Shown piece by piece: positions 42,491 through 55,737 of a DNA stretch of 64,000 bases; position 1 is the first letter of the stretch; every line of letters starts with the position of its first letter. A model generated the notes under the pieces. The model was not told where the DNA came from. It ran no database searches and worked only from the letters and a program-made list of their open reading frames with translations. The stretch lies in contig CDRNVI010000062.1 of assembly GCA_977017575.1 (NCBI GenBank), forward strand, positions 62,001 through 126,000, given 5' to 3'. The DNA comes from Paramoeba atlantica (lineage: Eukaryota > Protista > Discosea). The translations under genes were made by a program, and so were the position numbers.

Positions 42491-43834
42491 AAGTTGTGTC
42501 AACAAAAATCGTGTTATTTTCTGGGATAGGCAAACTCATTTTTTGCCCACGATGTCACGTTTACTTTCTTTTTGCTTTTATGTGGAAAAAAGAGCTCTTA
42601 GCTGCAGTTTATCGGTAACCCGGGGAACGGTATATTATTCAAATCGGAATTTGAATAATACTGTTACACTGCCGACTAATATTATTGAGTTTTTAATTAT
42701 AGGCAAAGCTATGCAACTTTTAATTAAAAAATCAATAATTTTTGTGCCAATAATTTTTGTAGAAATTTGTACATATCGACAAACAATAGAAGTTGTTAGT
42801 AGAGGGGCGGAAAAACCCAAAAGTAGGTCAAAAGTTTTTGTTTGCTCTCAAAAAGATTCAAGAATTTTTATGGGGAAGAAAGTTGTTTTTCACCAAAAAA
42901 TTATTATACCTAGGAGGTACAATAGGTGTTCCTAGGTAAAATAACCCGGACGGTGGTTTGCATCTCTCTAATCTTGTCAAATGCGTTGCGAAGGGCAGGT
43001 TATTAAATGGTCATTAAGTGAGGGGATGCGGGTGTGATCTCGCATGATCTCACGACCGGGTGTTGACATAAAGCCAATCTCGATCCTCCTGCGTCAAATC
43101 TTCTCATAAAATTTGAGTTTTTGTGCAAAATCTATGCCACTCTTCTCTAAAAAGTGGTTGCCAAGATCAGACCTCATGAGAAATTCAAAAACTGACCACA
43201 AAGATAAAAAAATGTTTCTCGCCTAAAATTGACAACTTTTAAATAGAAAAACAATAAATTTTGTACCATGAAATTTAGCGATAAGAATTTTTGGCTTGGG
43301 TGTATTAGAATAATATAGTGTTATGCGGCTCTATTTGAATAATATAACGTTATTTGAATACTATAGTGTTAATTTGAATACTATAGTGTTAATTTGAATA
43401 AAATAGTTGTGAGTAGCGAAAAATGCGGTTTTGGTGGATGATAAAGCAAAGGTTTGTCTAAAATCCTGTCCATAATGCCAAAAATTGGCGATTTGAATAT
43501 TATACGGTTATTTGAATTAAATATAATTCATACTATATAATATAATTTAACTATAATTTATATAGTGTTAATTTGAATAAAATAGTTGTGAGTAGCGAAA
43601 AATGCGGTTTTGGTGTATGATAAAGCAAAGGTTTGTCTAAAATCCGGTCCATCATGCGAAAAATTGGCGATTTGAATATTATACCGTTATTTGAATAATA
43701 TAGTGTTAATTTGAATAATATAGTGTAATTTGAATAATGTAGCGCTATTGAATAATATACCGTTCCCCGGGCTACATGAAGTATCGGAACTCCAAGATAC
43801 GGTACTCGCGTTGTCAGGTTGACGAGACTAATTT

Positions 43835-44137
43835 ATGGATCCGGAAGTACAACCACGTAGAACTCGTAAGAAACCAACGTGGGTATTGACTCTTACGGAA
43901 GTTGCAAGGAACGGTAAATCGGTAAGCACTGTATGGTTATACGTAAACGATCGAAATAAAGAAATCATGGAGCGGGTGATCAGGGTGCATACATTGGACA
44001 ACCAACGTACCATAGTAACTACAGACGGGTGGAAAAGATACTCGAATGTTATTTCATTTTGCGATCACTTTACTGTGAACCATTCCAGTAAAGGTCGAAG
44101 AGTCATGTCATTCAGCAGTAGAGCGGGCTATACGTAA
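43835..44137 (+). pseudogene. Merlin/ISXO2 transposase fragment
   Basis: RKKPTWVL..VNDRNKEIMERVI..IVTTDGWKRY..HFTVNHS. Confidence 0.8.
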
Positions 44138-44952
44138 ACAAGGTAGGCTATCAATGCCGTTGAGAGAGTTTAAGCAGACCGAGGCGTTGTTTACCTTACT
44201 TTTTCTAGACTCTTCTTTCTAGACTTTCTAGTGAGTAGCTTGTTAATGAAAGCGAAGATGAAGATTGGAAGTTCATACAAAGGTTACATTTGTAAGTTAC
44301 GACGAAATAACCTTCAAAATCGGCGTCAATTACATGCAGTACAAGAAAAGAAAAAAAGTGTATTTTTTTGAGACAAGGAATGGAAAATGTATTTAACCGC
44401 ATTTAACATTTCGAAAACATGAGTATTAAGCTTTTTATGCACTATCGTAAATTTTCAAAAAATGACTACAATATAAGTCATCTGCAGCTAAACAATTGTT
44501 TTTCAACGAACATTCAACGAACATATCCCCAATCCCCAATTACATTCACAAACAAAAAGGATGCTCCCCTTTTTCAGCAAAAAAAAATCGATGTATGTTC
44601 GTGTTTCCGTTCATCGAAAAGGACGTCCTGTTCGATGAATATTCATCGAATGCCCCCCTCCCCAAATATTGTATAGAGTTGAGTCATTCTCATGGTAATC
44701 TGGTGCTCTATTGAATCAGGAAGGATGCAAATCTACTGGTCTATTAAATAAATAAAAATTATTAAGTAGCAAACTAAAGCATGATCTTGATATAGTATCA
44801 CCGTCGACGAAAATAAGGAACGTTCGCTGTGCATTCGATTATAAATATATTTTTTTATAATTAATTATAATTCTACTTTTTTAACACATTCCTATTTGTA
44901 ATAAATATTTCCAAACCTTTCGCTTCTTATGACTCCGAAAAAAGTGATACAG

Positions 44953-45456
44953 CTACTTTCGTTGTTCCACCAGCTTTTCAATGAGTGCGTTACCCTTGTT
45001 ACGGACCTGTGCTGCCTCAACTGAAAGTTCTTTGCGTTGAGCGGCTGACAACTTCTGGTATTTGGCAGATACTTTCTTTGCCACCGCGCGGAAACAAGCT
45101 TTAGTATTCTTGTGGTTGCCCTTCTCTGCCTTGTATATCGCCGGCATGACACGTCGCACGAACAAACTATAAGGGCGACATTTAGCACCTTGAACTTGCG
45201 CTTTCAGTGACTGTTTTCGCTTCATATTCTCGGCAGCAATCTTGCTGAAGGATTGCACTTGAACAGGAGATAACTTTTTAAAAGAGGCATGTACTCCGGC
45301 GAGATCTGGAGATCCTTTTTTACCTTTGAGAAACTTTGACATAAATACACGCAGCGCACTTGTCGGGGCTGATTTTCCAGCCCACGGCTTATTGATAACT
45401 TTATGACGAAGCTTTGCGATGTTCTTGGTGAGGTTTGGAAGCGCACGAGAAAACAT
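44953..45456 (-). CDS. KAP/ABF2-like HMG protein, copy 3, 167 aa
   Basis: intact ORF; shares its 3' flank with copy 4. Confidence 0.75.
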   Translation of the reverse strand: MFSRALPNLTKNIAKLRHKVINKPWAGKSAPTSALRVFMSKFLKGKKGSPDLAGVHASFKKLSPVQVQSFSKIAAENMKRKQSLKAQVQGAKCRPYSLFVRRVMPAIYKAEKGNHKNTKACFRAVAKKVSAKYQKLSAAQRKELSVEAAQVRNKGNALIEKLVEQRK

Positions 45457-46299
45457 TAGAGATAGAAAGACAGAGAATTAGACAAAAAACCTAGTATGAG
45501 ATAAAATAAGATAATTTATTAGCCTTAACCTTTTACCTGTAGATTTATTGAGGGAGATATGGTGAGCATCTAACTCGTCTTCTAAGATTAATTCCGCGAG
45601 CGTGGAATGGGCGTAAAGCGAGTAATCCGGCGAACGGTATATTATTTAAATCGCCATTTAATTAATATAGTGTTAAAATTTCTATCAAAAGAATATAGCG
45701 CTATCTAATATTTAAATACCGTAGTAGTAGGTCCGCCATAGTGGGAAAATGAGGTGAATTTTGCCATTTAAATAATAAATTTATAATAATTAATAAATAA
45801 TTTTAATTCATGGCACAATTGTTTTTTAAATAAAAGTTCAATTTTTGGCTGGAAACATTTTTTTAATTTTTTGTCAATTTTTGAATTTCTCATGAGGTCT
45901 GATCTTGGCAACCACTTTCTAGAGAAGAGTGCCACAGATTTTTGTACAAAAACTTAAATATCATGACAGGATTTGACGAAGGGAGAGCAAGAGGCTTTTC
46001 TTCAACACCCGGTCGTGGGATCATGCGAGATGATCTTGCATCTCACATCACACCCACAGCCCCTCACTTGAGGGGCTGCGGGTACTTCGACCGAGACCGC
46101 ACCGAGACCGCGGTTCGTATTTTCGGTGGGGAGAGATAGAAAAACAGCCAAAAGTTTACATTTGTTTTTATTTTTAAGTGGAATTTCGAATTCGGTGTAC
46201 GCTTCTAGCTATATTTTCCTTTGTTTCTTTCTCTGAATCATTTTCATCCTTTTTACTAACAACGGCGCGTTTTTCTTTTCCCGTAAACTTTTCTCCTAA

Positions 46300-46950
46300 A
46301 TGTTTATGAATATCGAGAGCAATGACGCATTGCAAGAACGATTGACTGCTCTTGAGCCTGAGACAAGTGCCGAACACAAACTCTTCGATGTCATCAAGGC
46401 TTCGACGATCCGGGTCTTTACGAAGAGGCCCGACGTTTTCTCCAAGCCACGTTTGGAGATAAGCAATGCGGAGCTCAGTAGTAAAGTGGATGAAATCGCA
46501 GGGCGCGTGTCACGCACGATGGACAACTTCCTACCTGTTGCACGCTCTGTGTGTGGCATTGACTTGACCTCGTGCATCGTGACTCGCGCCCTGTTCCACT
46601 TGGTTGACCGCCGGGGCCATCTGCATCTGAGCGTCCGCCCCCGGAGCGCGTACTTCCTTGGAGAGGCAGCTGCCGACCTTGAAGAGTACCTTCAAGAAGA
46701 CCCCCTCTTTTCCCCCCATCGCCAAGGTGAAGTGGGCGACTTTGTGGACAGCGTGTGGCGCTCTGTTTCCGGGAAGCGGTCTCGCGTTTGCCAGCAGTGG
46801 CGTCAGCGCAAGCGGACCGCTTCTCGTCAAAATGAATCAAGCAGCGGGGCTGAAGTCTCGCCACCACCCCCAGAATACAATCCTCCCTCGTATACGGTGG
46901 CCAGCCCGATCGCTACTTCGGATCGTTCGGTTCGTTTCCCGGCCTTATAG
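46300..46950 (+). CDS. Transposon accessory protein of unknown family
   Basis: intact 216-aa ORF inside the TIRs; clear homologue at 54432-55106. Confidence 0.8.
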   Translation: MFMNIESNDALQERLTALEPETSAEHKLFDVIKASTIRVFTKRPDVFSKPRLEISNAELSSKVDEIAGRVSRTMDNFLPVARSVCGIDLTSCIVTRALFHLVDRRGHLHLSVRPRSAYFLGEAAADLEEYLQEDPLFSPHRQGEVGDFVDSVWRSVSGKRSRVCQQWRQRKRTASRQNESSSGAEVSPPPPEYNPPSYTVASPIATSDRSVRFPAL

Positions 46951-47240
46951 GTGTGCTCCACATGAGACGAGAAAGTACGAAGGTAAGACGGTAATAAGGT
47001 CTTACGAAGGTAAGACGGTAATAAGATGGCAAAGAAGGTAATAAGGCAAGTTAAGGTAAGGCAATTTCGTTCCCACTACTGTTCTGTTCGATTTTCCCTA
47101 ATTACTAGCTCATTCCACTAATTGTTATTTCATTCCACTAATTACAAGTACATGCTAAAATATTTCCGCCCAATAATAATACAACCCTACTTATTTTGCT
47201 TTTAAATCGAAATTTCTTTCAATCGTTTCATTCTCTCTCT

Positions 47241-48185
47241 ATGTTTGGCATCTCGATAGCACAGGTGTGGGAGTTCTACAACGAGCTCCGACGTGTGCAT
47301 GGATCCGATGTTACGGAGACTGATTACCGTCGTGTTCAGTCATCATTGTGCATCTGTTCTCTGAATTGCACATGGGAACAGTTGTACGATGTCCAAAGGG
47401 CGTGGCTCTCACCGGACGCCCCGTTGATTTCAATTCGGACTCTCCGGGATGATTTTACTCGTGTGGCGCAGCTGTGCCGTTCACCCCTGCTCATGAACCC
47501 CGAGCTACGGTTTACCCAGGGAGTATCATGGTTATCTGACGTAACCTGCATGCTGGACGTCACGACGATCCCATGTCGTGCAAGAAAACCGAGAGAAACA
47601 CCTGATGAAACCACCCGAGATAGCACCTATTCGGGAAAGCACCGGCAGCACTGCTTCAAGGTGGAAGTTTGGCTAACACTGGCCGGAGTTCCATTCTTCT
47701 TTCGCGGACCAGTTGTTGGCAGCATGCATGATGCCAAAATTTATAAGAGTACTAGTGTGCATCGTACTCCGCTGTTCACTCACCACAAAGATGAAATGTT
47801 CTTGGCCGATCTAGGGTACATAGGTTGTGCGCACTGCCTTGTACCCTATAAGAAAACTGGCCGTGGTCTCACCGATGATGAAAAACGTGTGAATGAAAGG
47901 ATTTCACTGATTCGCTCTCGAATTGAGCGACGTTTTGCACATTTCGACAAGTTTCGTTTTCTTCATGGTACTGATCATGATATACCATGGGTCAGAGACG
48001 CTTTTCAAAATGTTTCTGTAGTTACGTATGGACTGCTGGCTACTCAGCCGCAGCATGATTTCGATTCGATTATAAATTTAAGTTTGAAATCTACAAGTGA
48101 TGAAGGTGAGTGTTTATGTAGTAAAGGGTGCGGTGTAGTTGATGGTATCGAAAGCCGCAGAGAGTGGCTTAAGGAAAAAGCCTAA
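47241..48185 (+). CDS. DDE_Tnp_4-type (ISL2EU/Harbinger-like) transposase
   Basis: CMLDVT, YSGKHRQHCFK, GSMHDAKI, LADLGYIG, NERISLIRSRIERRFA; uninterrupted. Confidence 0.9.
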   Translation: MFGISIAQVWEFYNELRRVHGSDVTETDYRRVQSSLCICSLNCTWEQLYDVQRAWLSPDAPLISIRTLRDDFTRVAQLCRSPLLMNPELRFTQGVSWLSDVTCMLDVTTIPCRARKPRETPDETTRDSTYSGKHRQHCFKVEVWLTLAGVPFFFRGPVVGSMHDAKIYKSTSVHRTPLFTHHKDEMFLADLGYIGCAHCLVPYKKTGRGLTDDEKRVNERISLIRSRIERRFAHFDKFRFLHGTDHDIPWVRDAFQNVSVVTYGLLATQPQHDFDSIINLSLKSTSDEGECLCSKGCGVVDGIESRREWLKEKA

Positions 48186-48920
48186 AAAATCAAATAAGTG
48201 TGCTAAGTAATTTTATTTACTTATGGGCGGGGGGAGGGGGTAGGCTTCCGGTGGGCCTAGGGGGTGTACACCAAAAAGTAAAATATTTACGTTCAAGGCT
48301 CGTGATAAATTTGTAGTTATAAATGAGTGTATCAGGGTTACCCCTTTCTTTGGTAAAATCACGCGTATATTCCTTTTAGTAGATTTGTTACTAACCGTAC
48401 AGATTTGTTAATAACCGTAAATTTCATTGAGATTTCCTCTCCAACAATGTCCGGATTCATGTAGCCTCGCCTTCGCCTTCTACGCCCCTGCCCCCACCCC
48501 CCACCCATTCCACGCTTTCTGTTCTTGCACTCAGATAAGTGCGTACGCCGCACCGAGACCGCGCCGAGACCGCACCGAATCCCCACCCGCAGCCCCTCAC
48601 TTAATGACCACTTATTGTCCTTCCCTTCGCAACGCATTTGACAAGATTAGAGAGATGTAATTTATTTTTCTTCTTGTCTACCACGATTTCAAATCTAATG
48701 TTTTGGTGAAAAGCTACTTTGCTCCCCGTAAAAAATCTTGAATCTTTTTGGGGGCAAAAAAACCCTTTTGACCTACTTTTTGGTTTCTTCCGCCTCTCTA
48801 CCAAGAACTTCTATTAGTCGATATGTACAAATTTCTAGAAAATTTACTGTAACAAAAATTATTGATTGTTCAATTAAAAGTTGCAGAGCTTCGCCAATAA
48901 TTAAAAGCTCAATAATATTA

Positions 48921-49666
48921 CTGTCCCTTTCATAAAATCTGTCCCCCCTACTTAAGAGTCCGTGGGGTACCCCCCCTACTTAAGAGTCCTTTTTGACGGA
49001 TCCTCGGGCTGCCTGCGGCGCGAAGTGCTGCCAGATTTGTTTTTTGATTTTTTTCTATTTTCTTTGATTTTTTTTGTTGTCTGCCCATTGCGTTTAGTTG
49101 CGTTTTTAATATTTCTAAGCTATTTATATTTGATGGTACTCCGAGGAAGGAGCAGACTACGGGAAGGCATGTTACACAACCATCCTCCTCAGCCCTCTTC
49201 AACTCTCTCACGAACTGATCGAAGTTCTTCTCCCCTCCGATCACCCTCCTCACACGAGAACGGCAAATTTGCCGACCAAACCCCTTCATCTATCTCCCCA
49301 CCTAACCACGGTAACCTTCCGTTACCCCATTCCGGGAGCCAAGCTCGTTCTCTTCTATCCCAAGTGTGCGCGGTATTGTATTACGAGTATCATTATATTC
49401 TCCTGCATATCAAGGGTCATATTCTGAATATTTATGACAGTTTTTTTTTGAACATGCCTCAGTAGCACGTCGGGTACAGACGCCGACCTTCATTAGACAA
49501 AAATAGAAAAAAAATAGAGAAACACATGGACAAAAAAGGAACCGGCCATATTGAAATTTTATGAAAAAATGCTGACCCCCCCACTTAAGAGTCCGAAAAA
49601 TTGTGACCCCCCCACTTAAGAGTCCAAATGCCCAAAATCGGCGGACTCTTAAGGAGGGGGGGACAG
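48921..49666. mobile_element. TA-flanked MITE (CTGTCCCCCCTACTTAAGAGTCC TIR)
   Basis: inverted termini and internal CCCCCCACTTAAGAGTCC repeats. Confidence 0.75.
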
Positions 49667-49726
49667 TAATTTTAATTATAAAATATAAAACTTTTAGATT
49701 TATAATTACCCCCCCTCTAATAACTA

Positions 49727-50707
49727 CCGTCACCCCCCCCTTTATACTTCCGCCGGTTTCGGTACTTTTGGAAGTATAAAGGCGGGGGTCTGACTTTCGG
49801 AAGTATAAAGGGGGGGTCTGATTTTTTGAAAAATCCGCGAAACAAATATTTTTGAAAAAGGGGCAAAAAAAAAAAATGCGCCGCTTCGCGGCGCTGGTTT
49901 CCTATTATTCTATCTAAAAATCAATCATCTAATCTCCAAACATGCAGGGCACAATGTTTGCTTCCGTGTTTCACTTGCACACAATCAACATACGCTGTAT
50001 ATTACGCTGTAGTGAATACGTGTCGGGACGATCTACCATTAGAAGCTTCATGGGACAGTCTTTGAAACGAGGTACATTCGCCTTTGCTGCAGCAGGCGCA
50101 TGTCCGCGCTGGCTGTCATCCCGCCCAGTTCGCTAAGGAGGAGTTCGTCATTTTTTTCGCATCTCGACATGTTTGTCCTCGTGCAAACCCCATCGCGCTT
50201 GCGATCACGATAGACTTTTTTCTAGAAAAGTCCGACACCATTTTTTCGGATGGAGCGGATGGTTCGAGATCAGACGCCGTACTTCTCGCTGATTTGTGGA
50301 GCACTGCTACTCGAATGACACACATTCAACTTCTCCTACATTGTTGGGTTCTTTCCTCCCTGGGGTGAACCGACGGACACTGGTAATGTCGCAGGCTCCG
50401 CGCTTGAAACCATTATTTCGTTGGGAGGCCGAACGCGATGAAGAGGGGGATAAAGCTTAACCCACTGTGAGTATTGACATGGGAAAAAATACGGCAAATA
50501 ATTTAAATGTATATCTAGCAATATCTCTACACACATCTCTAACGTTTAATAAAAAAAATGTAGAAAATTGTTATAAAAAATGCTTCGCGGCGTATTTTTT
50601 TTGGGACCGGAAGTATAAAGGTGGGGGGCTGATTTTTCATCTGGATGAAAACGGAAGTATAAAGGGGGGGGTTGACCCCCCTGAAGTATAAAGGAGGGGG
50701 GTGACAG
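49727..50707. mobile_element. TA-flanked MITE (C(C/T)GTCACCCCCCCCTTTATACTTC TIR)
   Basis: inverted termini, GAAGTATAAAGG subterminal repeats, GCGCCGCTTCGCGGCGC hairpin. Confidence 0.75.
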
Positions 50708-50849
50708 TAATTATAAATAGAAAATATACAGTGTTATATTTAATTACGGTATTATTTAATTACGCTTTTAAGGTTATTTTTGGCTAAAATTAATCTTAAT
50801 CAAATTAACCGTAATATAATCCACTCGTAAATTAATAATTTTTGAACAC

Positions 50850-53360
50850 ACTTTTTGAGTAACGTTTAAGCGCCCAAGCCATTGGATTCGTCTGAGATCA
50901 TTTTATAAAGGTTTGTGTTTCGCGCTGACGTAGTTCCCTGGCCATTTGCTTCTGAGAGAGCTTCTCCCCCGGGAAGAACAGGAAGCGTTTTACCGAGAGA
51001 ATGAGGTTCCAGGCGGTCACAATCTTCTCGTCAGGGGATTTAGATGGGAACCTACGGCAAACATGTGCTAAGTGTTCTCTCCACGCGGGGGTCTGGACTG
51101 CATAAAGTTTGCGCAGAGCCCCTCCCCAACAGTTCCGCCAGGTTTTCGGACGGGGCGTGGTCGGTTCCTTCTGTATACGCGCTCTGTGTGCATGGGGGCG
51201 TAACGGAAACAGGTTCGGACGGAATTACGGCCGTGTGTGCGGGCTCCGGCTGGAGGGGGCTGGCCGTAATGGCTGCCACCGCGATCCCTTCGAGTATCAT
51301 CTCGCTGACGAGCGGGGTGGGCTCCGCCATAAGGACCGGCGCGAGGCTGCCTTCCTCAGAGTGTGGCTCACCGGCGTGCTGGTTGCCATCCCCCTGACGA
51401 GGGAAGTTCGGTTCAGAACCTTTCGGGAGGTTACCGGCCTTTGCGGGAATGCTGCGGGTTGCGGTGGGGCCCTAGCCTTAGGGGGGGATGTTACGTAAGG
51501 GCCTGAAGGGAGGCTGCGCACGACAGACCGAGTATTGCGAGTCTTGCGGTGAGGTCCCGGGTTAGCCTCGATGCAGCCCCGTCTCAGGTTGCATCGCACC
51601 AGTTCCGCCGACCACCCCGAGTCGGCGATTAAACCCTCAGAAGGGAGGAAACACCAGTATACGGACCCGTCTTCCGCCTCGAAAGGGGTCCATGTACATG
51701 CGAAGTCGTGAGCTAGTGCCAACGTGTGGCAAAGGAAGAAGGGAATATTTTCTGCGGGGAGGGGGGATTTCGTGTTGATGCACGAGCCGTGTGTTGTTCC
51801 GTCGAACACCCTGACATGGTGTCCGTATGGCGAATCGTTGAAAGGTACGAGCAGGGTGGCCCAAATGCTGGGCGAGGCGCCCACGTCCTCGTCTGTCTCC
51901 AGGTAGGGGCCTCCATGGTCGCTGGTGAGACATACGCGGTCCGACGGGACCCCTAGCGTGCGGCCGACTGTGTGAGCTAAGCCTTGGAGTGGGCATCCGG
52001 GTGGGACCGGAACCATGATGTGCCCCATAGCGTGGGGCCCTAGATGCAGGTTAACCTTGGTCCAGACCTCCTCATGGAGTTCCGGAGGGGGAGGGGGGGC
52101 GTCCCTGGTGGGCCGTGCGCTCCCCCCGACTGGTGGCGAAATCGAGGGGCGTCAGCCATAGGGGGCGGCGGAGAGTTTACTTCAATGTGCCCACTCGCCG
52201 GGGTTGTCGGGGCCCTGTTTACTAAGGCGATGCGCTGCAGTTCCCCGAGCCACACGTTGTGGAGTTCGGAGGCTGAGGCCCACTGGAGGTCTGAGATATC
52301 TGAAGCTCCCCACCGGTGTTCCTTGAGAAGGTGGGCGGCGGTCGCGCGGACAGCGGCCTGTTCGTGGACGAGCTTATGTTCCGCCAACTTCCGCTGATCG
52401 AGGAAGACTCGCCCACAAGTATGACAAAGATGTGCTCGATCCTCGACCAGTTTGCGTTCCCTATGCTCCTGCCTCGCGTCCTGGCAGAGTAGGGCGAGCC
52501 ACTCTGAGATGATGTCGTCCCGCGCCCTCGCGAAGTCGGCCTTCAGAGCTCGGGCAGCGCTCGCTAGACGATGCTCTTCGACTTCGTGTCCGAGTACACT
52601 AGGTCCGAGGACACTCCATCCTTGCGTCCCCTATTGAAGAGAGCCCCCATAATTTCGGCATTCTTAGATGCTATGATCGCAAGTTGGTCCTAGAGAGGGG
52701 GTGCTTTGTCAGTTACGGTGCCGGAGGGGTTCTGTACCTTGGGTTGATAGGCGCGGAGGGATGGGTGAGAGCAATCTGGCCTTGTCCGCGTAAGAGTGGG
52801 TCAAATGGGTGGGCGTCGGCCGAGGGGCGAAGGAGACCTGGGAGGAGGAGCGGGTGCGGGGGCCTTCGGCTTGACGGAGGCTCGGCTTGCGGGGAGCCGA
52901 CCGGCCCCTGGACGTGGCGCGCGTGGGGGTAGAGAAACGTGAACGAGAGCGTGTTCTACGGCCTGGGGATGTGTCCCGTCCCGGGGAGATTCTGGCGGGT
53001 GATGAGTGGCTACCAGCGCTCTGGCGTTCGGCGCGGAGTTCAACACACCCCGGGCATAGAAGGTTAAAAGGTCGCCTCGGGGAGAAGGGCTGCGCGCAGA
53101 AACCACACGGCCGGTTGTCGAGGGAGGAGGAGGCCCCCGCGTGACGACGGGGGGAGGTCTGCTTGGGTCCACCGTGGGCGGGCCCGAGAGAAGAGGAGTG
53201 GTCCCGCGGAGATCGGGACAATCGTCGAGATGAATCAGCGCACGGCTGGCACATCCGGTGGGAGGGGGAGAGTGGTTCATACTTCGAACCTCAAGTTGCG
53301 CAAAACAAGATTCCCTGGAGCGGGGGTTTTGCCATGGGGGTAAAATAACGAAGAAAATTT
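50850..53360 (-). mobile_element. Decayed GC-rich retroelement-like ORF region directly downstream of an SL-like exon (CRE/SLACS-like 5' part?)
   Basis: two C4 zinc fingers, Pro/Arg-rich linkers, 2A-like GCIEANPGP, several frameshifts; no RT retained. Confidence 0.5.
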
Positions 53361-53396
53361 AACAAGGTACAGAAACTGTATCTTATCGTTAAAGTT
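53361..53396 (-). ncRNA. Spliced-leader exon-like sequence AACTTTAACGATAAGATACAGTTTCTGTACCTTGTT
   Basis: contains the conserved euglenozoan SL core ATACAGTTTCTGTAC and begins AAC; no intron follows. Confidence 0.7.
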
Positions 53397-54192
53397 AAAT
53401 CTTTATCGGTAAAATGATATCGCAGAACATAACCTATTGAACACCAATTTAAATTTTAGAATTACAAGACGCTGTGGAGCAAATTTATGATCAAAGCGAT
53501 GATGAAACTGACATGGAAGAAAACCGTTCTGAATTAGAAATGGTTCAACGAATCTAAGTCATTCCGGATTGCTCCGATTGGTCACTGGCAGGCCAGACCC
53601 TTCACATGTAGATTTGAAACTTTCGAGGCCGAAGTCCTCTACCTGTTTTCGTTAGTACAAGGCGGCAACAACGTGCTGCTACCAACCCGTTGCGTCGACG
53701 AACCCAAGACAATCTTCAAAAGTTATCATTCCTGCAGCTACGTAGCATTCCTGTAGCCGTTAACATTCTCCCCGGAACGGTAAACCGGACTACGGTTTAA
53801 AATCCCGGTATGACGGCGTCGTCTTCACCAAGAAAGTTGCACCAAGAACCTTTGTGCATCGATCTTTGTGCGCCATCTGTGTCCCCCCCTTTGAAGACCA
53901 CTGGGCGTGGCCCTGCCTCGCCTTATCCCGATGCAACAGTCGGTTGCAGTGCACCCCTCCGGCTGTGTAAAGAGGTGGTAAGTTGTCTGGAGAATCTGAC
54001 ACCCCCCTTACTTCACCACACGTCCAGTGACTAAATGTGGTGAAGTAAGGGGGGAGGCGAAGTAAGGGGGGGTAACGGTATGTGGAAGCCGGGTTCAGGC
54101 GGGGGGTGCAGGGGGTGTAGGAGAGTGCAGGGAGGCTCTGCAGCTGGCAATGAAACATTCTAAGGATTCACACAGATTGGTGCCCATACATG

Positions 54193-55353
54193 TGAGGGGC
54201 TGCGGGTGACGTTAACCGCGGTCTCGCACGGTCTCGGCGCGGTCTCGCGCGGTCTCATATTTGTAAAATGGGCTAGAGGGTAAAAACACGACTTGCAGAT
54301 TAGGTAAAATGGTATTTGAGGTGAACACTAAACATCCGCTTTGACACACTTAAAACCATCACGAATAATAAGCAGAACTTAAAATATGATCTTCTCTCTT
54401 TCTCCTTCAACTTTTCCTGAACGCGTCCTTTTTAGTTCAGCCGCGGGAACGAGACTACACGGTCTGATGTTCTTATTTCTTTCGCCGTATAATAGGACGG
54501 CGTGGGGACATTCTTCTCCTGATCTGCAGCCGTGGGACAAGCTTCTGGGGTCTGAGATGCTGGCTTCTGAGATGCTTCATCCGCCCCTCGTTTGAGCCGG
54601 CGACGATGCCGGTAGGTCACGCAGGCACGAGAACGCCTCCCGGATACAGAGCGCCACAAACTATCCACGAAGTCTCCTACTTCGTTGTCCCGTCGAGGTG
54701 CATACATCGGGCTGAGTTCCAGGAAGCTTTGGAGATCCTGGGCAGCTTCTCCAACAAAGTAAACGGCGTGCGACGGAACATCCATAAGCAGATGCCCGCG
54801 GCGATCTACGATGTGAAGAATGGCGCGCTCCAGTATCTGTGGCGTAATGTCTATGCCACAAACGGAACGGCCCCCGTGAAGGAAACTATCCATGGTGCGA
54901 TGAATGCGTTCCAGGATTTCTTCGACTTTTGCTCCTAGCTCTTCTTCTGTGATAATCAGCTTCGGAGGGGTAAATACGTTAACACGTTTCGTGAAAACCC
55001 TCTTGGTTGAAGCTAAAACAACCTCATAGATCGCCTTTTCACTTTCAACCTCCGAGGGGTTCGCAATTCGAGCTTTTAGGTCAGCATTACTCTCAATTCC
55101 AGTCATTGACAAGACAAAAAGATACGGAAAGCGAATTAACAAACTAAAGATGTTCAAAAATAGTCTTACTTCTATCTTCATCAAGGCCTACAATATGAGT
55201 ACTCCATACACATCGTATATACGAAGTGAAAATTCTTTTTTATTCAAATTATGCTCTACTCTCCATCCAAAAACTAGTATTTTTTTGTCTCTCCAAGCCA
55301 AGAGCAAACCGCGGTCTCGCGCGGTATCGTGTGCCACGACCCGCAGCCCCTCA
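54193..55353 (-). mobile_element. Non-autonomous relative of the ISL2EU element carrying only the accessory ORF
   Basis: TIR TGAGGGGCTGCGGG; TG duplicated at 54191-92 and 55354-55; GCGGTCTCG subterminal repeats. Confidence 0.85.
54432..55106 (-). CDS. Transposon accessory protein of unknown family, 224 aa
   Basis: intact from MTGIESN; shares RVFTKR, RTMD.F..RSVCGID, VDRRGHL, EVGDFVDS.WRSVSG.RSR and TSDR with 46300-46950. Confidence 0.8.
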   Translation of the reverse strand: MTGIESNADLKARIANPSEVESEKAIYEVVLASTKRVFTKRVNVFTPPKLIITEEELGAKVEEILERIHRTMDSFLHGGRSVCGIDITPQILERAILHIVDRRGHLLMDVPSHAVYFVGEAAQDLQSFLELSPMYAPRRDNEVGDFVDSLWRSVSGRRSRACVTYRHRRRLKRGADEASQKPASQTPEACPTAADQEKNVPTPSYYTAKEIRTSDRVVSFPRLN

Positions 55354-55737
55354 TGAGGGGCTGTATGTTGACCCGTAAAACAGCAAAAAAAAGAGCCTTG
55401 GAAAATATGAACCTTGGAAAAAACAGTAAAATAGAGGAAAAAGCGAATCTAAAAGTTGTATAGTACCCTGAGTGTCCTCCACCATTTGTAGTACTTTTTT
55501 GGGTCTTTTTGGAACTGAATAATTGAGTTCATAACTATTTTTATAACTTTTTGAGGACATCTTTTTAAGGCCTTAATGCTTTTTATATAGCCTCTATAAG
55601 GCATTTGTGGTTGTTATAATGTTTTTTATCTCAGGAGAGAACTAGAGAACTAGGAAGAAAAAAGAAACAAAGATATTTGCTAGGGGAACGAGATCTATCA
55701 AACACAATGGAGAGTCTGTAATTAGTATCTGTAGATA

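Follow-up and report, generated by a model that had tools for sequence, protein, structure and literature searches.

The window analysed here is a stretch of 64,000 nucleotides of contig CDRNVI010000062.1 (positions 62,001 to 126,000) from the Paramoeba atlantica assembly GCA_977017575.1. It is eukaryotic and repeat-rich, shows no sign of human DNA, and holds two elements of one DNA transposon family, whose autonomous members carry two genes, one for a DDE transposase and one, the open reading frame ORF1, for an accessory protein. Element 1 (46070–48598, + strand, 2529 bp) has both genes and belongs to lineage A of the family. It is bounded by 14-bp terminal inverted repeats (TIRs), GAGGGGCTGCGGGT at 46070–46083 (+) and its reverse complement ACCCGCAGCCCCTC at 48585–48598 (+). 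The left flank, ACTT (46066–46069), recurs as the right flank at 48599–48602 and forms the target-site duplication (TSD). Inside the TIRs lie subterminal repeats, namely two copies of the 9-bp CGAGACCGC with a period of 11 bp at the 5' end (46092–46111, +) and, at the 3' end (48554–48573, +), the same repeat in the same orientation together with degenerate neighbours. ORF1 (46300–46950, +) encodes an orphan accessory protein of 216 aa. The transposase gene (47241–48185, +) lies 290 bp downstream on the same strand and encodes 314 aa from the first ATG, with a match to DDE_Tnp_4 (Pfam PF13359, E 2.9e-19). Sibling copies on contigs C81, C30, C44, C70 and C99 show 94–98% nucleotide identity to element 1.

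The catalytic triad D106/D190/E229 is present in the transposase of element 1 and is conserved in the transposases of all lineages. The original prediction described this transposase as intact, which is correct for the triad but not for the C-terminus. The gene has a 20-bp deletion near its 3' end relative to the C81 haplotig, its allele, and to the C30 copy, so that the protein lacks its last ~15 residues, including a basic EPKK tail. The family transposase starts at a conserved M-F/Y-G-I/V-S/T motif, about 100 aa before the first catalytic aspartate. A Pfam scan of the transposase at E up to 1 returned DDE_Tnp_4 only and no THAP domain, and NCBIfam gave a weak but specific similarity of the catalytic core to transpos_IS5_4 (E 1.6e-7 to 1.2e-11). 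The spacer between the two genes contains two perfect 23-bp direct repeats with a spacing of 27 bp (46976–47025, +). Pyrimidine-rich tracts reach both start codons of element 1, with no AG between.

Element 2 (54194–55352, − strand, 1159 bp) belongs to lineage B and has lost its transposase gene by internal deletion. Its 14-bp TIR is identical to that of element 1, and its flanks read ATGT and ATGA. The sole gene is an ORF1 of 224 aa, counted from the conserved methionine (54432–55106, −). It is 48% identical to ORF1 of element 1 (BLASTP E 2e-69) and contains the conserved blocks that the original prediction had quoted. Two subterminal repeats were found at its 5' end (55311–55329, −) and four at its 3' end (54218–54257, −; GCGGTCTCG on the + strand). 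All the features first described for this locus, two elements with the same TIR, a 216-aa ORF1 upstream of a DDE transposase and a diverged but intact homologue, are present.

The family was searched in the whole host assembly (G000; 45.7 Mb in 248 contigs, with many haplotig pairs), where 126 matches to ORF1 and 128 to the transposase were found. The exact 14-bp TIR has 310 copies in the genome versus 0 for a reversed control, and 6 occurrences of the 12-mer TIR core were counted in the window versus 0.18 expected. Many loci are duplicated at ~97–98% identity with the same insertions (for example C62/C81, C3/C30, C51/C60 and C12/C2). Both haplotypes, or else homeologous copies, seem to be present in the assembly, which roughly doubles the copy counts. 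Some two dozen copies of ORF1 have an open frame over the full length. The autonomous elements measure 2.4–2.55 kb and carry both genes on one strand, with a transposase of 330–370 aa and an ORF1 of about 215–225 aa. ORF1 was located directly upstream, within ~0.3 kb and on the same strand, in 23 of the 25 best transposase copies. The two others are a C79 copy without ORF1 and lineage F, in which the transposase precedes ORF1. A lineage F element (L038, G000:C20:498438-500980) is complete, with TIRs, the TSD ACCT, the reversed gene order and a repeat class of its own, GAAACAGCG.

At least seven lineages (A–F and H) were distinguished. Between lineages, the identity is 40–50% for ORF1 and 55–63% for the transposase, which means that ORF1 evolves faster. 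In lineage C (L033, G000:C71:147990-150446), the transposase is 76% identical to that of lineage A, whereas its ORF1 is 65–74% identical to those of B and H and only 48% to that of A. Lineage C is a recombinant of two lineages. The linkage of the two genes persists despite the swap in gene order and the exchange of modules, so the genes have been kept paired across a long divergence. Between lineages, the synonymous divergence (dS) of ORF1 is saturated (>1.5 or undefined) and the non-synonymous divergence (dN) is 0.30–0.57, with a ratio of at most ~0.35; ORF1 is therefore a selected transposon gene. Within lineages dN/dS is ~1, as expected for copies decaying after insertion. These results show that the transposon has ORF1 as an integral gene under selection, and that ORF1 has been inherited together with the transposase in no fewer than seven diverged lineages. 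Other DDE_Tnp_4 families of the genome (L066–L070, on contigs C14, C23, C51, C30 and C21) are 30–36% identical to the family transposase and have no ORF1 homologue; no Myb-like partners were evident near their transposase genes on inspection.

The ends of the family were analysed with 27 TIR pairs. The elements end in G...C, and identical 4-bp flanks were observed for 22 pairs, with A as the first base in all 22 and T as the last base in 20 (A in 2). The base beside the left TIR belongs to the duplication, because in the ANNA cases (ACTA and AATA) it changes together with the fourth base on the right. Five pairs are imperfect, four of them differing at the fourth base only; by themselves these would fit a 2-bp reading, but two of them are the 39-bp TIR-TIR oddities described below. 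MITEs (miniature inverted-repeat transposable elements) provided an empty site. A MITE on C26 has AATT on either side, and a single AATT without an element was found in four paralogous repeat copies (C93, C53, C52 and C8). A clean empty site was not found for a C7 MITE or for a C12 element that carries only ORF1. The TSD is 4 bp, ANNT, and is supported by the paralogous empty site. The ends of the family are therefore G...C with a 4-bp duplication (ACTT for element 1), not T...A with a 2-bp duplication.

The subterminal 9-bp repeats are direct, not inverted. They have the same orientation at both ends and form asymmetric arrays with an 11-bp period. Two copies are found on the ORF1-side end, and the other end has 2–4 clear copies in the elements of the window and up to 6 in other lineages. 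Six repeat classes exist under one constant TIR: CGAGACCGC, CGAAACCGC, CGAACCCGC, CGAAACAGC, CGAGATCAC and CGAGGTTTC. The 9-mer also occurs within the coding sequence of the lineage A ORF1 (46776), which was regarded as a coincidence, since the other lineages have no such copy. MITEs of 56–187 bp consist almost only of the TIR and 9-bp repeat arrays, for example a 142-bp family with at least 20 copies. These amplified MITEs hold little beyond the TIR and the arrays, which are therefore the cis requirements. Two loci of 39 bp (L064, G000:C14:~350207-350245; L065, G000:C7:~65376-65414) consist of nothing but two TIRs and one repeat unit, and a 56-bp locus on C8 (L050) is a clean deletion derivative of lineage A. 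These three could be minimal MITEs or footprints.

To which family ORF1 belongs was addressed with sequence searches. In a Pfam scan of 19 ORF1 family members at E up to 1, no family was found, including Myb/SANT/MADF and YqaJ. NCBIfam gave nothing meaningful for ORF1, and profile searches of PDB sequences gave no match. Word-based protein searches, with ORF1 and with a profile including distant homologues, recovered solely the copies of this genome and one further protein, P0021. An exhaustive hidden Markov model (HMM) search of 1.84 billion representative proteins gave 24 matches. All but three distant ones and P0023 closely resemble the ORF1 lineages of this genome, and the sources that were looked up are ENA. 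P0023, a 486-aa tandem-repeat protein (E 4.9e-5), looks spurious, as only short repeated stretches matched. The distant matches are the singletons P0021 (ENA, E 1.4e-9), P0022 (Logan, E 1.7e-6) and P0024 (Logan, E 1.7e-4). They are ~22% identical to ORF1 and have the motifs T-K/R-R, W/V-C-G, R-G-H-L, P-x-F and W-x-S-x-x-G in common with it. The ORF1 family is thus rare, yet it extends beyond this genome. Scans of metagenome contigs with the distant-homologue pair of ORF1, and with the transposase relative P0036, gave no match among the contigs scanned.

The structure of ORF1 was modelled with AlphaFold2 from an alignment including the distant homologues, and the predicted local distance difference test score (pLDDT) was 75 overall and 85–90 for residues 30–165. 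The predicted structure is an all-alpha, seven-helix domain with two tiny beta bridges, and its helical core would span about residues 21–157. The core is followed by a basic helix (residues 158–181, 8 K/R versus 1 D/E), a variable disordered tail and a conserved C-terminal R..RFP.L peptide. Foldseek searches of ORF1 models against PDB (two models) and BFVD gave nothing at E <= 0.001. In a wide VIA-align comparison, the best match was a de novo design (Z 7.1–7.5), and natural proteins reached at most Z 5.6, which is within the noise for helical proteins. The fold matches to the DNA-binding domains of TnsB and Tn4430 TnpA, to integrase N-domains and to archaeal rod-virus coat proteins fall within this noise and were not used as evidence. 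Comparison with the ESM Atlas gave scores <=0.83, and the Atlas model was poor. By any test here, ORF1 is neither a Myb/SANT nor a YqaJ protein, although a very diverged three-helix motif is conceivable. The original prediction of an accessory protein of no known family, which is neither a Myb, MADF or YqaJ partner nor a host gene, agrees with these results: no Pfam family, PDB sequence or fold above noise was matched, and the structure and exhaustive HMM searches gave no such partner or host gene.

The best explanation, to which we assign a probability of roughly 0.6, is that this is a two-gene cut-and-paste family in which the orphan ORF1 would fill the role that a Myb-like ORF1 plays in PIF/Harbinger elements. 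By analogy with these elements, ORF1 may bind the subterminal 9-bp repeats, the transposase or both, and may in this way bring the transposase to the ends and help to assemble them. Its basic helix could possibly aid nuclear entry. The transposase itself would recognise the invariant TIR and would make a 4-bp staggered cut at ANNT. According to PMC9710019, which cites Sinzelle 2008, the Myb-like protein of Harbinger3_DR binds a 9-bp subterminal motif as well as the transposase and is required for transposition. The second protein of the two-gene element of rice (PMC2836001) is likewise a precedent.

Several observations weigh against this explanation. The overall charge of ORF1 is near neutral (pI 6.6–9.0), and only helix 158–181 is strongly basic. 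No helix-turn-helix (HTH), Myb or other DNA-binding fold was recognised in ORF1 by the structure searches. Lineages A and B have the same repeat, yet their ORF1 proteins are only ~50% identical. When alignment columns were compared with the repeat class ({A,B} versus {C,D,H}), one column tracked the class in the transposase and none did in ORF1. The transposase may need no help in end binding or nuclear import, because it carries a conserved N-terminus of its own that is a candidate for DNA binding and, in intact copies, ends in a basic tail. Both contacts of ORF1, with the repeats and with the transposase, are ones that we infer by analogy.

A stronger form of this explanation is possible but doubtful. 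ORF1 could be the founder of a new class of accessory proteins, with a fold that has no solved relative and with sequence specificity for the 9-bp repeats. The six repeat classes might in that case be markers of lineages that diverged through changes in this second layer of recognition. If this is true, the family would be a natural system in which to study the ways that two-component transposons divide or share their mobilisation.

Alternatively, ORF1 could be a regulator or a host-interaction factor, such as an inhibitor of transposition, a chromatin or target-site tether, or an anti-silencing protein, with the R..RFP.L peptide docking a host protein. A core that is not basic would suit such a function, as would the short linear motif that is conserved at the extreme C-terminus, beyond a variable disordered linker. 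The failure to find a DNA-binding fold, the N-terminal region and basic tail owned by the transposase, and the missing co-variation of ORF1 with the repeat class also favour it. However, an inhibitor or a dispensable factor would often be lost, whereas all autonomous lineages have retained ORF1, also where the gene order changed and where recombination took place. Moreover, according to PMC9710019 and PMC2836001, the better-studied two-gene PHIS elements (the superfamily of PIF/Harbinger, ISL2EU and Spy) all require their second protein for transposition. A regulatory or host-docking function is a real alternative, but we consider it the less likely one.

The intact ORF1 of element 2 had also suggested that ORF1 is kept by selection in transposase-less elements, where it would act in trans or benefit the host. 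Elements carrying only ORF1 have arisen at least three times (element 2, C12:207978-209198 and a C49 copy). Both haplotig copies of element 2 have an open ORF1, with 2 synonymous and 0 non-synonymous differences between them, but two differences are too few to test (p = 0.06). Element 2 occupies a single locus and is 97.3% identical to an autonomous copy on C87, apart from a single 1237-bp deletion spanning the transposase gene. Between its ORF1 and that of the C87 copy there are 3 synonymous and 11 non-synonymous differences, a neutral ratio. Element 2 is a recent internal-deletion derivative and not an old transposase-less lineage, and the 48% identity of the two ORF1 proteins in the window is the distance between the autonomous lineages A and B, not a divergence built up without a transposase. 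For the C12 derivative, of lineage E, the sister copy on C2 is frameshifted by 2 bp, and no amplified family of ORF1-only elements was seen in the genome. The purifying selection claimed for ORF1 thus holds between lineages but is not supported in the transposase-less element, and a trans-acting or host-beneficial ORF1 kept without its transposase is quite improbable. That ORF1 is a captured host gene, a Pack-type passenger, is less credible still: the older element next to element 1 does carry unrelated ORFs, but the HMM search found no host-gene family, only the copies of this genome and the three distant singletons, and the position of ORF1 is fixed across seven lineages, the transposases of which have drifted apart to ~60% identity.

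This older neighbour (43020–46065) is non-autonomous. It has the same terminal 14-mer, with one mismatch per end, TIRs of ~210 bp and subterminal repeats of GATCTC type, and it carries an IS1595/Merlin-like fragment (43835–44137) and an HMG-box-like ORF (44953–45456). Element 1 is inserted exactly against its right end, with ACTT in common. The older element has no direct TSD of its own. The flanks of the older element and element 1 taken together, 42677–43019 and 48599–48920, are inverted copies of each other (85–91% complementary), with AAGT on the left side and ACTT on the right side as part of the match. The arrangement resembles the outcome of an aberrant or alternative transposition, or else of insertion into a palindrome. 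On the right of element 2, the flank at 55353–55362, ATGAGGGGCTG, partly repeats the start of the family's own TIR. Along with the position of element 1 against the older end, it hints at insertion beside existing ends.

A kinetoplastid-type spliced-leader-like sequence (..CAGTTTCTGTACC..) is located at ~53350–53395 (−), beside a GC-rich region of decayed ORFs, and Rfam gave no match in the window at gathering thresholds. Relatives of the transposase at 40–45% identity were found in JGI and Logan contigs, and the contigs of the cluster P0036 are 2.46–2.50 kb long, the size of a whole element. One relative was found among the EukProt data, in the transcriptome of Papus ankaliazontas PhM-4, a prokinetoplastid raised on the bodonid Procryptobia, so that transcription of a related transposase is seen in another culture of a kinetoplastid. 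In the searchable literature, kinetoplastids were thought to be without DNA transposons until 2021, when PMC8101967 reported decayed copies of Merlin that lack TIRs, and no paper on PHIS elements in kinetoplastids was found. The family described here is rich and recently mobile, with intact TIRs, TSDs, open genes, MITEs and an empty site. The role of helper proteins in two-gene transposons is poorly understood, and the family offers a compact test case of 2.5 kb. If active, it could possibly serve as a genetic tool for free-living kinetoplastids.

The DDE_Tnp_4 triad, the TIR-bounded cut-and-paste structure and the short TSD place the family in the PHIS superfamily (PIF/Harbinger-ISL2EU-Spy; IS5-like). 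Han et al. 2015 (PMC4482050) described the groups ISL2EU (TSD AT, THAP, YqaJ, animals only), PIF/Harbinger (TWA, Myb), Nuwa (CWG or TNA, Myb) and Pangu (ANT). By these published criteria, with the groups compared by description, the family fits none of them.

The original prediction had called the element ISL2EU-like, and membership in the ISL2EU group is very hard to maintain. The DDE_Tnp_4 transposase shows the same superfamily and the two-gene layout is alike, and a 2-bp reading of the flanks (T...A ends, an A/NN/T target) gives the same string at ANNT sites. However, in the ANNA cases the base next to the TIR changes with the far flank and is part of the duplication. ISL2EU elements have a 2-bp AT TSD in an A/AT/T target, whereas the duplication of this family is 4 bp, ANNT or ANNA, with variable middle bases. 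Their transposase has a THAP domain and an HTH, their partner is a YqaJ exonuclease and they are known from animals only, while the family has neither THAP nor YqaJ, its TIR starts with GA and not GG, and its host is a kinetoplastid-like protist and not an animal.

The bacterial IS5 family is alike in the weak similarity of the catalytic core. Some groups of IS5 have short TSDs that reach 4 bp. Unlike IS5, the family is eukaryotic and has two genes, an accessory protein and subterminal repeat arrays. Pangu (PMC4482050) is nearest in layout, with a transposase that has only the DDE domain and a second ORF without a known motif, and this resemblance is one of layout only. The Pangu TSD has A as its first and T as its last base, like that of bacterial IS5 relatives, but it is 3 bp long (ANT), versus 4 bp here. 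Pangu elements are also longer, averaging ~3.5 kb versus 2.4–2.55 kb, and their TIRs start with AG or GG versus GA here.

PIF/Harbinger elements (Harbinger3_DR and Ping/Pong) share with the family the DDE_Tnp_4 transposase, the two genes, short TIRs, a 9-bp subterminal motif and abundant MITEs. They need a second protein alongside the transposase, and ORF1 may be likened to it as the second gene. In contrast, their TSD is 3 bp, TWA, versus 4 bp, ANNT, and their partner is a Myb/SANT/MADF protein, whereas ORF1 has no such signature and no recognisable fold. The family transposase is also shorter, with its own conserved start motif, in a kinetoplastid-like protist host. With its 4-bp ANNT duplication and a partner protein without a known fold, the family widens the PHIS superfamily.

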